A stretch of DNA of 18,212 bases from the sequence record NC_074653.1; one strand, 5' to 3'. The notes beneath the pieces are model-generated. The model was not told the DNA's origin, did no database searches, and was given only the letters and a program-made list of their open reading frames with translations. Positions within the stretch are counted from its first letter, which is position 1; each line of letters begins with the position of its first letter. This document shows, piece after piece, positions 160 through 18,137 of the stretch. A program made the position numbers and the translations under genes.

Positions 160-328
160 ATACTAACTACTTACACGCAGCCTCTTTACAATTAGTACGG
201 CGAAAAATCTAAATAGTTTAACTCACGGCGAACCCGGGATAATATATAATATACCTGGAATGACACATGTAAAGCGTGAAAAGCGCGCTTATCCCGCTTT
301 ACAAAGGTCTAGCCATTTCAACTATCCC

Positions 329-376
329 CTTTAAGTTTAGCAAGATGCGCTTTATAAGTGTCCACTTTTTCCCCAC
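329..376 (+). repeat. Degenerate inner inverted repeat, left copy
   Basis: 39/48 ungapped identity to the reverse complement of 18090-18137. The first 15 bp (CTTTAAGTTTAGCAA) are exact. Confidence 0.9.
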
Positions 377-441
377 CAACGTCAAGTTTTTCCCCGACAA
401 CGTCCACTTTTTCCCCAACAACGTCAAGTTTTTCCCCCAAC
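360..441 (+). repeat. Four tandem ~21-bp iteron-like repeats (ABAB pattern)
   Basis: GTCCACTTTTTCCCCACCAAC (360), GTCAAGTTTTTCCCCGACAAC (381), GTCCACTTTTTCCCCAACAAC (402), GTCAAGTTTTTCCCCCAAC (423). Confidence 0.95.
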
Positions 442-486
442 TTAGTTTCCGCTTTTCGCGCCGTGGGGTGTTTATTCCTACTAAAA

Positions 487-494
487 TATAAATA
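487..494 (+). promoter_or_regulatory. TATA box of the helicase gene
   Basis: TATAAATA starts 28 nt before ATG 515. Confidence 0.65.
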
Positions 495-514
495 TAAGCT
501 TTTGCTGGGTTTTT

Positions 515-2092
515 ATGGGTTCTAAAAAAAGAAGAGAAGCGGCCGAAACCGAGGCCCTCACGGAGGCCACCCAACTCCCCGTAAATGACTCATTTCTCTC
601 TTCATTGCCAAGCTCAGTCTGGTTGTTAAAGAATTGCCGACTGGGATATAAAAGTATTGAGTGTCCATATGACATTAAGATCCATGTTAGGTGGTTTGAG
701 GACTACGTGGCTGTTAGCATAAACGGCGAAAAAGTCAAGCTGACTTATGAGGACTTCTATTCCATTGTCACGGGCGCTGAATATACAGTTAAACAACTCA
801 ATTGGGCCCACAAACTTGAGGTGGGAGATGAAGTGGTGACAGCCACCCCATGCTGGGATAGGAGTGGAAACCGCTTTTTTGTTATTAGGTATAACAATGA
901 CACTACAGACAGAAAGCCGATAATTACAAAGGGCGATACCATATTTATGCCAGGGTTCAACGCTAGCTTATGTCCACAGTATCGATATATCCGTGACGCC
1001 ACGGAGGAGGAGTTCAAAAAAGTCAACGCGGACCTCCTAAAGAATATGTCCCACCTCCCCAGCGATATCAGACACGCAATATACTATGCAATTATCTATG
1101 GTTTCGCGGTCCCACTGTCAGAACAAAGGCCCATTTTGGGATTATGGGGCCCTCCTGGAATAGGAAAGACCACGATACTGAAACTAGTGGCGGCTTTCCA
1201 TAACGCCTACATTGTTGAGGGGTACAGCCCAGCTAGCATAAGAAACCTACTGACATGGCAAAATGTTATTGCTGATGACGTATTAGAGTCCACTAGCGCT
1301 GAAAATATCCCTCAATTAACTGACTTGATACTGGCATATTTTAATAGACACGTGACCGCCAGAGTCTACACGACAAGTGCGTTTAGGAGGTTCTACACCC
1401 GCGGATCCCTATGGATGGCTGGGGCTAATCTCTTAGAAATTATCAACTATCGTGAGGGAATACCTAGGAGGTTACGGTTATATGGTTTGTTTAAGAAAGT
1501 CACTCCTGCAGACATTAACCATATATACAAAGATATAGAGTACTACATGGCGTTAAGCTACATAGTAGTGCCTAAGAAAATAATTGCTTTAGACGTGATA
1601 CTTGGGGACGTCTCAACGCCTACATCTCTATTGCTAGATACCGCTATGAGTATAGTGGGAATGTATGCCGATGCAGAACAGAAATTTGAGGAGACCTATG
1701 AGACGCCGCATGTGGAGTCCCATATTGTTTCGCTATTGCAGAGAACAATAAAGCAATTGAGAAAAGCGAAAGCCGCCCCAAAATACGCCAAGCCGCCCTA
1801 TCTCATAGTATTCTCTAAAGCCAGTAACATTCCCAAGCGCATTAGCACTAAGGCTATCATAAACGAGGACACTAAGGTGGTAGACGGTAAGCTAGTCAAT
1901 GTCCACAAGGTTTCTAGGGAGGCCCAAACATATACCACCGAAGAGCTTGTGAAGATATTCCGCTCTTTAGGTCTCCCGCTAGAAATCAAAGATAAGGCGG
2001 TTGTCGTGGAGGACACTAAGCTTGAGGAGGCTTTGCAGATAGCGTGTATGCGCTTACAAGACATGGGAGAGACGTCACCATATTGCCAATAG
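515..2092 (+). CDS. AAA+ ATPase, D5/P4-like superfamily 3 helicase (525 aa)
   Basis: Walker A GPPGIGKT (aa 212-219) preceded by SEQRPILGLW, Walker B VIADD, motif-C/sensor-1 SLWMAGAN, Arg finger GIPRRLRL. Confidence 0.85.
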   Translation: MGSKKRREAAETEALTEATQLPVNDSFLSSLPSSVWLLKNCRLGYKSIECPYDIKIHVRWFEDYVAVSINGEKVKLTYEDFYSIVTGAEYTVKQLNWAHKLEVGDEVVTATPCWDRSGNRFFVIRYNNDTTDRKPIITKGDTIFMPGFNASLCPQYRYIRDATEEEFKKVNADLLKNMSHLPSDIRHAIYYAIIYGFAVPLSEQRPILGLWGPPGIGKTTILKLVAAFHNAYIVEGYSPASIRNLLTWQNVIADDVLESTSAENIPQLTDLILAYFNRHVTARVYTTSAFRRFYTRGSLWMAGANLLEIINYREGIPRRLRLYGLFKKVTPADINHIYKDIEYYMALSYIVVPKKIIALDVILGDVSTPTSLLLDTAMSIVGMYADAEQKFEETYETPHVESHIVSLLQRTIKQLRKAKAAPKYAKPPYLIVFSKASNIPKRISTKAIINEDTKVVDGKLVNVHKVSREAQTYTTEELVKIFRSLGLPLEIKDKAVVVEDTKLEEALQIACMRLQDMGETSPYCQ

Positions 2093-2121
2093 TATTTTTT
2101 AACCCGCACCATTGTCTTTCT

Positions 2122-3045
2122 ATGTCTCAAAGACTCATCTTCTTTTTGAGCGCGTTTTCAATTGTCTATTTCACGCTCTTTAGCGGAAACCTATACCTTG
2201 ATTTAGTCATGTGGTTTATGGTTGTCATCTCCACCATATATGCGGCCGAAATATCCATGGCTTTATCTAATGCACGGCTGTGGTATAACGTCTTAGTCGT
2301 TTCTATGGCTATGTCATTGCCTCAGACCTTATTTGCCATAAAGCTAGCCAGCAGCGGGAAATATCTAGCTTCATGGATAGACACGCTGGGGTCCACGCTT
2401 GTTGACGCTATGCTAGTGACAGCTGTCCTTAGGAGGTACGTTATCGGCTCTCCCATGATATGGAATATGGTACCATTCTTGATAATGTGGTCCATGGCGG
2501 CTCTTTATGTCAACTATCACGCTTATGCTATCACCTACGGCCTTTTCAGACTCCCTGAGTGGGTGATAGTGGTAATTGGTATACTCCTCCCAATGGTCCT
2601 AGTGAGGCCCACGGGACTACCCCGTAAGAGCGAACTCATCATGTTGTTACTACACGCAGTTTCTACTGGGGTGTCCTCATACCAACTGTCCAATGTAATT
2701 GCGCAATTGCCTATCCATGAAATACAGCTAGGAATAGTGGCCACCATCCTTGCCACACTGCCAGACTTCTTAGTGGCCCTAATTATACGGAGTGCTGTGG
2801 CGAAAATCCTCAACGAGGTGGCCTCCGAGGAGGAGGCGTTAGCCACAATGCTAGCGTCCGCGGTTCACGACCAAATACTTATCCCAGCGCTAGTACTCAC
2901 ATTGTACCCGGAGGTGGCCGCTTACTATCCACACTATTTCAATGTCATAATTATCCTCCTCAAATTCACGCTGTTATTCCGCAATGTCTACTGGCTATTC
3001 GGCGTACCCTTCACCATCTTCTTGTTGTTAATGCCTCCCGTGTAG
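2122..3045 (+). CDS. CaCA-family (Na+/Ca2+ exchanger-like) membrane transporter (307 aa)
   Basis: Polytopic hydrophobic protein with two alpha-repeat-like motifs: SLPQ...LGSTLVD and TLPD...LASAVHD. Start moved from 2044 to ATG 2122, which avoids overlap and sits 25 nt after TTTTAA. Confidence 0.75.
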   Translation: MSQRLIFFLSAFSIVYFTLFSGNLYLDLVMWFMVVISTIYAAEISMALSNARLWYNVLVVSMAMSLPQTLFAIKLASSGKYLASWIDTLGSTLVDAMLVTAVLRRYVIGSPMIWNMVPFLIMWSMAALYVNYHAYAITYGLFRLPEWVIVVIGILLPMVLVRPTGLPRKSELIMLLLHAVSTGVSSYQLSNVIAQLPIHEIQLGIVATILATLPDFLVALIIRSAVAKILNEVASEEEALATMLASAVHDQILIPALVLTLYPEVAAYYPHYFNVIIILLKFTLLFRNVYWLFGVPFTIFLLLMPPV

Positions 3046-3084
3046 AGCGAAAAGTTATTATAGCCATTATGCGAAAAATCTTTC

Positions 3085-3225
3085 ATGAGTAAGTATCTAG
3101 AAAAGGCGCTTTATGTTTTGGCGCTAGTGGCGGCCTTATCTGGCATTTTCGGTTTTGTCTCTCAGGCCTCCGCGGCTCTTTTTGCCGCATTGCTATTAGC
3201 CATTGGCGAATTGATTGAGGATTAA
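3085..3225 (+). CDS. Small membrane protein (46 aa), not in the ORF track
   Basis: MSKYLEKALYVLALVAALSGIFGFVSQASAALFAALLLAIGELIED. It fills the gap, has two hydrophobic segments, and TTATTATA lies at 3055-3062. Confidence 0.7.
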   Translation: MSKYLEKALYVLALVAALSGIFGFVSQASAALFAALLLAIGELIED

Positions 3226-18089: not shown

Positions 18090-18137
18090 GTGGGGGAAAG
18101 GCGGATATTTGTAAAACACATTTTGCTAAACTTAAAG
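18090..18137 (-). repeat. Degenerate inner inverted repeat, right copy
   Basis: Reverse complement is 39/48 identical to 329-376 and ends in one iteron-like unit. Confidence 0.9.

Follow-up and report, generated by a model that had tools for sequence, protein, structure and literature searches.

A conserved 21-bp direct-repeat array, putatively protein-binding, precedes the helicase-like ATPase gene of Pyrobaculum spherical virus 2

The iterons of theta-replicating plasmids consist of several direct repeats of ~20 bp that are phased with the DNA helix, specific in sequence to their replicon, and located beside a replication-protein gene with an inverted repeat nearby (PMC5043065). An array near the left end of Pyrobaculum spherical virus 2 (PSV2) resembles the iterons of P1, F, R6K, RK2 and pPS10 and those of the lambda origin in that it contains at least three direct repeats in the ~17-22-bp size range, in helical phase and with a replicon-specific sequence, and in that it adjoins a helicase-like gene and has a separate inverted repeat nearby. 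It differs from them in that PSV2 has no Rep, RepA or O-type initiator, the neighboring gene (ORF2) coding instead for a helicase-like ATPase of the AAA+ class; the AT-rich box beside the array is a promoter element, the arms of the palindrome are unlike the units, and the replicon is that of a linear archaeal virus. Viral helicases of the SF3/D5 type use their own DNA-binding domain to read short repeated sites near or upstream of the helicase gene, as illustrated by the ori and crr repeats of phage P4 alpha, the pentanucleotides of SV40 large T antigen and the sites of papillomavirus E1. The predicted fold of ORF2 matches D5-type primase-helicases; the 21-bp units, however, are much longer than those sites and unrelated in sequence, MCM proteins score at least as high as SF3 proteins, and no origin-binding domain was identified in ORF2.

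Three other kinds of cis-acting site invite comparison. The A-repeats of the adenovirus packaging domain follow the bipartite consensus TTTGN8CG. Situated at nt 220-400, in the interval that separates the left ITR from E1, they serve as binding sites for the IVa2 ATPase (PMC4404914). PSV2 shares with adenovirus a linear double-stranded DNA genome with terminal repeats and T/A-containing repeats a few hundred bp from the left end, but the PSV2 unit (GTCMASTTTTTNYCC) does not match the adenovirus consensus, the two viruses infect hosts of different domains and have unrelated virion architectures, and packaging-motor proteins are not evidenced in globuloviruses. Plasmid centromeres of the parC type consist of repeats that precede the gene of a ParA, ParM or TubZ NTPase and are accompanied by a gene for a centromere-binding protein, whereas in PSV2, ORF2 combines the Walker A sequence GPPGIGKT with an AAA+ fold and ORF3 is a transporter with nine transmembrane segments. 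Archaeal ORB and mini-ORB elements are dyad boxes that are inverted around a DUE and located beside orc1/cdc6, while the PSV2 units are direct and free of dyads, and the PSV2 annotation contains no orc1/cdc6 gene.

The left control region of the PSV2 genome

The window analyzed here comprises all 18,212 bp of the linear PSV2 genome (Globuloviridae) and is 100% identical to MN876845 / NC_074653; the host is P. arsenaticum 2GA from Pozzuoli. The termini are perfect 55-bp terminal inverted repeats, and all 32 of the 32 annotated genes are on the + strand. The published description of PSV2 reports the terminal repeats and names ORF2 a ClpB-like AAA+ ATPase; it also records that a function is annotated for only ~2% of globulovirus genes, the other ~98% lacking one, and that the polymerase, origin, promoter architecture and packaging signal of the Globuloviridae are all still unrecognized (10.1101/2020.01.16.907410). 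A text search of that description for mentions of direct repeats gave no hits, so the 21-bp array appears to be unreported there.

The left 514 bp of PSV2 is a structured control region, the features of which are collected in Table 1. Nearly all PSV2 genes have a TATA-like box 18-30 nt upstream of the start codon. Over the whole genome, oligo-T runs of at least 5 on the + strand number 21 in 1,039 internal intergenic nt vs 17 in 16,481 coding nt, a ~20-fold intergenic enrichment that is seen on the + strand only (just 3 of 28 A runs of at least 5 are intergenic), and this strand-specific signal between the genes most likely represents archaeal terminators.

Table 1. Features of the PSV2 left end, its right-end counterpart, and the homologous ATPase genes of other globuloviruses (positions in the respective genome unless stated otherwise)
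Feature	Coordinates	Strand	Basis or remark
15-bp pure A/T block (ATAATATATAATATA)	239-253	+	Conserved in relatives
36-bp near-perfect palindrome (arms TGTAAAGCGtGAaAAGCG and CGCTTaTCcCGCTTTACA)	268-303		18-nt arms, 2 mismatches in PSV2
GenBank ORF01, 71 aa, heptapeptide repeat over the array	276-491	+	Annotation
Conserved segment with TATA-like CTTTAAGTTTAG and GCGCTTTAYAAG	329-359	+	Directly 5' of unit 1
Array of four head-to-tail 21-bp direct repeats	360-443	+	TRF, repeat search, shuffles, PWM
Array units 1, 2, 3 and 4	360-380, 381-401, 402-422, 423-443	+	Contiguous
Conserved promoter-proximal block (AACTTAGTTTCCGCTTTTCGCGCCGTGGGGTG)	439-470	+	Between array and TATA box
ORF2 promoter TATA box	485-498	+	In all genomes, TATAAAWAT starts 28-29 nt 5' of the aligned ATG
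ORF2, 525-aa AAA+ ATPase with helicase-like fold	515-2092	+	Motifs, predicted model
ORF2 motifs (residues)	212-219, 253-256, 301-305, 318-319		Walker A GPPGIGKT, Walker B ADDV, MAGAN, RR
Inverted copy (81%) of 329-376, including degenerate unit ATCCGCCTTTCCCCCAC	18090-18137	-	PSV2-specific
ATPase gene of PSV	1444-3189
ATPase gene of TSPV1	836-2437
ATPase gene of TTSV1	202-1716

The 36-bp palindrome is the most highly conserved element of the left non-coding region and is perfect in one relative (L006). Its center lies 74.5 bp from unit 1 in PSV2 and 75.5 bp from unit 1 in all five relatives in which the full array is available, and it is a candidate dimer-binding site or cruciform. The idea that the units are half-sites of the palindrome, following iteron and operator logic, was rejected, the palindrome ranking 72nd in a scan with a position weight matrix (PWM) of the units. 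The A/T block to the left of the palindrome ends 107 bp upstream of the array (253 to 360) and is also TATA-like; it is either a candidate unwinding element or a promoter from which a short transcript would run rightward. At the other end of the genome, the inverted copy of 329-376 lies 76-123 nt from the right terminus. It is absent from the right ends of three relatives (L011, L012 and L013), and the degenerate unit within it (PWM score 10.0, rank 9) is not, taken alone, above chance.

An AT-rich stretch at 481-498 had been likened by the first-pass annotation of this DNA to the AT-rich segment of plasmid and phage origins. The stretch is present, 17-34 nt before the ORF2 ATG, but it is the conserved TATA box of ORF2, and its reading as an unwinding element is not supported. 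Tandem duplications tend to arise in the ORF2 promoter region: one of ~75 bp in L008 (1-154) takes in the whole promoter-proximal block and creates a second TATA box, and L007 (about 362-385) has a partial duplication of that block, 23 nt long.

The terminal repeats themselves vary among close relatives. The genome represented by L006 has a 97-bp terminal inverted repeat (L006 1-97 / L012 right end), and its right end carries about five copies of GGCGCC-N-CTAGAAT/CTAAGAT, the first two of which lie inside the 97-bp repeat and depart slightly from the motif. The L005 contig has a 30-nt terminal inverted repeat (L005 1-30 / L011 right end); its counterpart in PSV2, 92-122, is not repeated there. 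In two sequencing runs (X1 and X2), the depth of Logan contigs is 231-252 to the left of the array (1-500) vs 556-797 to its right (515-1200), thus ~2-3 times lower on the left, possibly as an end-of-molecule library effect.

The 21-bp units and their conservation among relatives

The first-pass annotation had described four iteron-like repeats of 21 bp, spanning 360-441 and phased on one face of the DNA. The period is borne out by TRF (period 21, 3.4 copies, 86% matches, score 116) and by a separate repeat search (spacing 21/21), and the array itself stands, with its end extended to 443 and the last 5-6 nt of unit 4 merging into the flank. A degenerate pattern of the unit matches at the array alone and has 0 matches in 200 dinucleotide-preserving shuffles. 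Using a family PWM built from 18 units of six genomes, the four PSV2 units score 22-24 bits and the best other site in the PSV2 genome 12.6, and the scan found no further copies of the unit elsewhere in that genome. The same-face arrangement is likewise upheld, as the units are contiguous at exactly 21 bp, or 2 x 10.5, in all six genomes. The family consensus, GTC-M-A-S-TTTTT-[NYCC]-NNN-A-NN, has near-invariant positions at G1, T2, C3, A5, T8-T11, C14-C15 and A19, such that a unit is made up of a family-wide GTCMAS head and T tract, four genome-specific positions (12-15) and a loose spacer. The T tract is the part of the unit best conserved between genomes (0.85).

The array shows no self-complementarity, and its units are direct and without internal dyads. 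A search of PSV2 1-700 against Rfam returned no family at E<=1, and a known RNA family was set aside as the identity of the array. The sequence TTTTTCCCC with one mismatch allowed occurs 12 times vs 5.2 expected, 5 of the 12 occurrences being inside the array. A G-quadruplex, i-motif or triplex formed from the CCCC and TTTTTCCCC tracts was also considered and rejected, given that relatives have ACCC, ATCC, ACAC or ACGA in place of CCCC and that the array lacks self-structure. The T5 tracts are in phase, but heat abolishes most of the curvature of A-tracts and growth of the host takes place near 90 °C, so we do not rely on static curvature of the array. Logan contigs of four of the 15 listed runs end inside the array, as expected when a repeat exceeds the word size of the assembler.

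A word search with ORF2 of the Logan, NCBI and ENA assemblies yielded five clusters, 79-89% identical to the query, plus a fragment of 316 aa that covers 60% of ORF2 at 88% identity, and a cluster listing added further members. No more relatives turned up when IMG/VR, JGI metagenomes and GTDB genomes were scanned with ORF2 profiles or the palindrome pattern. Left ends covering the full array were obtained for L005, L006, L007, L014 and L016, along with a partial one for L015 and only the promoter-proximal part for L008; each derives from a different sample, and all are uncultured and metagenomic. Pairwise ORF2 identity is 84-95% among the seven array-bearing genomes (PSV2, L005-L007 and L014-L016). 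By alignment, the homologous site of all five full relatives holds exactly three 21-bp units without gaps between them; a conserved 15-nt segment that is not a repeat (GACAATATCGCCCTT) then takes the place of PSV2 unit 4, and the distance from unit 1 to a conserved anchor (ACTTAGTTT) is 78-80 nt in all six genomes. Free variation in copy number, as expected of a slippage repeat, was not seen, and the maintenance of copy number, period and register across the relatives argues against free slippage.

This constancy of structure is accompanied by rapid turnover of sequence. Mean pairwise identity among the six genomes is 95% in the palindrome (268-303), 84% in the other left non-coding DNA (123-267 and 304-359), 78% at ORF2 third codon positions and 65% in array units 1-3, indicating that the array changes faster than third codon positions, our near-neutral yardstick, while the three-unit, 21-bp structure is kept. 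The units are more alike within one genome than to their positional counterparts in other genomes. At positions 12-15, identity is 0.85 within vs 0.52 between genomes, and 0 of 20,000 label permutations reach the observed value; the core that follows the T tract is CCCC in PSV2, mostly CCCC-like in L005, ACCC in L006, ATCC in L014, ACAC in L015 and ACG(T/A) in L007. Judging from these alignments, the array is subject to concerted evolution around a conserved scaffold, with number, period and position fixed. The genome-specific core would be the expected appearance of replicon-specific protein-binding sites, and homogenization alone could contribute to it.

In PSV2, the heads of the four units alternate (CAC, AAG, CAC, AAG), exactly as the first-pass annotation described, and 360-395 and 402-437 are 97% identical compared with 83% for neighboring units. 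The suggestion that this ABAB super-repeat positions two different binders or a heterodimer is not supported by the comparison with relatives, where the heads are CAC/AAG/GAG, CAC/AAC/AAC, CAC/CAC/AAC or CAC/AAG/AAG; the super-repeat is missing from all of them, and one recent copy event in PSV2 suffices to produce it. Units 3-4 of PSV2 are a 36-nt near-exact copy of units 1-2, and the copy took the place of an ancestral unit 3 and the unique segment, altering the length by a net +1. We conclude from the alignment that the ABAB pattern is the trace of a single recent conversion or duplication of 36-42 bp and, being found in PSV2 only, is not a two-binder design.

The ORF2 ATPase and the leaders of other globuloviruses

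Exhaustive profile searches place ORF2 in a small family with nine representatives, and the family alignment keeps GxxGxGKT, hhhADDV, AYFDR, LRGxLhhAGxN and an RR pair; the ORF2 motifs are conserved in 13 sequences. Sequence profiles from Pfam, PHROGs and the PDB match only the P-loop of ORF2. An AlphaFold model reached a pLDDT of 70.6 with the family alignment and 38.8 with close relatives only. The best Foldseek matches to the model are the helicase region of NrS-1, MCM subunits and ASFV PrimPol, together with SCCmec Cch, the SaPI5 primase-helicase and vaccinia D5, and VIA-align gives Z scores of 12.6 for MCM, 10.8 for SaPI5 and Cch, and 10.9 for RavA, an AAA+ protein that is not a helicase. 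The first-pass annotation had called the downstream gene a helicase gene. It is annotated as encoding a ClpB-like AAA+ ATPase, and the predicted fold is best matched by replicative helicases, with RavA matching too; a role for ORF2 as a replicative helicase is, on the predicted model, plausible but not proven. ORF2 is a candidate binder or loader for the array. ORF2 residues 127 (N/D) and 464 (H/R/L) track the array type, an association that is not significant because 11 of 35 partitions do equally well.

Homologs of ORF2 open the genomes of other globuloviruses (PSV ORF582, TSPV1 GP1 and TTSV1 ORF1), and in all four lineages of the family the ATPase gene is the first or second gene, always after a long non-coding leader, which measures 201 bp in TTSV1 and reaches 835 bp in TSPV1. 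Upstream of ORF582 (915-1060), PSV has three GCTTTCAACT direct repeats spaced by 19-20 bp (1003-1060); 15 nt of the repeat recur, perfectly matched but inverted, 93 bp before them, and the PSV leader also contains an AACGGCG/CGCCGTT palindrome and a 22-bp x 3.2 array (1167-1235; region 1120-1235). The 835-bp TSPV1 leader has a 21-bp x 2 repeat (557-590) and an 18-nt inverted repeat. No such repeats were found in the 201-bp leader of TTSV1, the record of which may lack the true termini. The PSV and TSPV1 repeats thus resemble those of PSV2 in preceding the homologous ATPase gene, in having a period of 19-22 bp and in having GC-rich palindromes nearby, but their sequences are unrelated to the PSV2 units and their copy number is 2-3. 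TTTCAAC, considered as a possible motif of the whole family, forms clusters in PSV and close to some termini and is not clearly enriched.

Possible functions of the array

The array is probably a selected, putative protein-binding array. We propose that its units are non-coding binding sites on one face of the helix, which would be read by a virus-encoded, sequence-specific DNA-binding protein; monomers or head-to-tail subunits would be placed every two helical turns, forming one phased nucleoprotein complex in the interval from the 36-bp palindrome to the promoter of ORF2. Such a complex would most likely serve to recruit or load the helicase-like ORF2 ATPase for genome replication, and it would probably set ORF2 transcription as well. 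Protein binding itself, the identity of the virus-encoded binder and replication initiation as the outcome are inferred.

An origin-linked, iteron-like array working with ORF2 is the single most likely function, although we hold it tentatively and at somewhat less than even chances. It is favored because the array adjoins the only helicase-like gene of the family, keeps a fixed register to the palindrome and has a genome-specific core, and because distant globuloviruses repeat the layout with unrelated direct repeats of ~20-22 bp. It is disfavored by the lack of a clear unwinding element, given that the AT-rich stretch first proposed for that role is the TATA box, and by the presence of the array at only one end in relatives, since linear genomes with terminal inverted repeats often initiate at their termini. 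Also counting against it are the lack of significant covariation with ORF2, the match of the ORF2 fold to RavA, the restriction of sequence-profile matches to the P-loop, and the fact that gene conversion alone could give a genome-specific core without any protein reader. The supported part of the original iteron-like interpretation is a set of phased, non-random repeats with a genome-specific core beside a helicase-like gene, and not the ABAB design or the unwinding element at 481-498.

Binding of a protein to the array could serve purposes other than replication. We judge it unlikely that the array acts in transcription only, as an operator or activating sequence of the ORF2 promoter to which a viral regulator (for example, the winged-helix protein ORF32) or a host regulator would bind. 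Such a site would be well placed, as the array ends ~45 bp before the ORF2 TATA box, some 50 to 130 bp upstream of where transcription is expected to start; cooperative binding of a regulator suits the same-face phasing, and ORF32 is the only annotated DNA-binding protein. The distance between array and TATA box varies, however (it is 20 nt longer in L007, and L008 has 75 bp duplicated), whereas that to the palindrome is fixed; in addition, the units are direct, non-palindromic repeats, and the ORF32 sequence and the array are found together in three genomes only. Rather less probable still is a signal for packaging or segregation, either a one-ended cis-acting site for nucleoprotein assembly and envelopment or a site for partition of an episome in a chronic carrier state. 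Lying at nt 360-443 of a linear genome, after the left terminal repeat and ahead of the first gene, the array recalls the adenovirus A-repeats in position, relatives have it at one end only, and the genome-specific core would provide specificity. These features are offset by a sequence unlike TTTGN8CG and by an ORF2 fold that matches replicative helicases and not ParA, ParM or known packaging ATPases, and for partition by the identity of ORF3, a membrane transporter and not a centromere-binding protein.

The four T5 tracts could act as a terminator array that stops a short left-end RNA starting at the TATA-like boxes of 239-253 or 349-358 and thereby insulates the ORF2 promoter, in keeping with the ~20-fold enrichment of T runs between genes on the + strand and with the T tract being the best-conserved part of the unit (0.85). 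We consider this improbable: the exact 21.0-bp period, the GTCMAS head and the genome-specific positions 12-15 would be left unexplained, L007 retains a single T run of at least 4, the region is found in none of the runs on record as RNA, and there is no Rfam match. That the array is a neutral, functionless minisatellite, made uniform by slippage or gene conversion alone, would fit with its outpacing synonymous sites, with the recent two-unit copy in PSV2 and with the neighboring duplications in L007 and L008. This possibility we regard as very improbable, in light of the three units in five of five full relatives, the 78-80-nt block in six genomes, the fixed register to the palindrome, and family-wide invariant positions that persist at 35% divergence. 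Least credible of all is that the array codes for V-[HK]-F-F-P-x-N heptads, either within ORF01 or in a 48-aa peptide starting at ATG345. The period does equal seven codons, GenBank ORF01 spans the array, and a 47-codon frame is open in five of six genomes, with +1 and -1 indels in PSV2 that restore the frame. Purines are scarce in this stretch, though, and none of the three + frames is closed, so the open frame carries no weight, and in L007 the frame is broken. All relatives have an in-frame TAG or TAA directly 5' of the codon aligned to ATG345, which is itself TTG in three of them and TTA, a non-start codon, in two (L005 and L007). The encoded peptide would undergo radical changes between genomes (FFP, FLS, LLP and FSR), its stop codon would fall within the ORF2 TATA box, and ORF01 has no Pfam or PHROG match. 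An intact ORF with a start codon is not conserved in the relatives, and ORF01 is probably not a gene, but a gene-calling artifact over a pyrimidine-rich control region.

If the origin-linked reading is taken further, the palindrome, the array and the ORF2 ATPase would together form a replication-origin module of the Globuloviridae, with the 4-nt core as a code for specificity or incompatibility; we offer this broader proposal as a doubtful one. If it is true, the code would stop co-circulating PSV2-like viruses of one hot spring from cross-using each other's initiators. To our knowledge, few genetic tools exist for Pyrobaculum, and the array would be a natural starting point for a Pyrobaculum shuttle vector or mini-replicon. 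It is the first concrete cis-element of the family that is open to footprinting and origin mapping, in PSV2 and P. arsenaticum 2GA.
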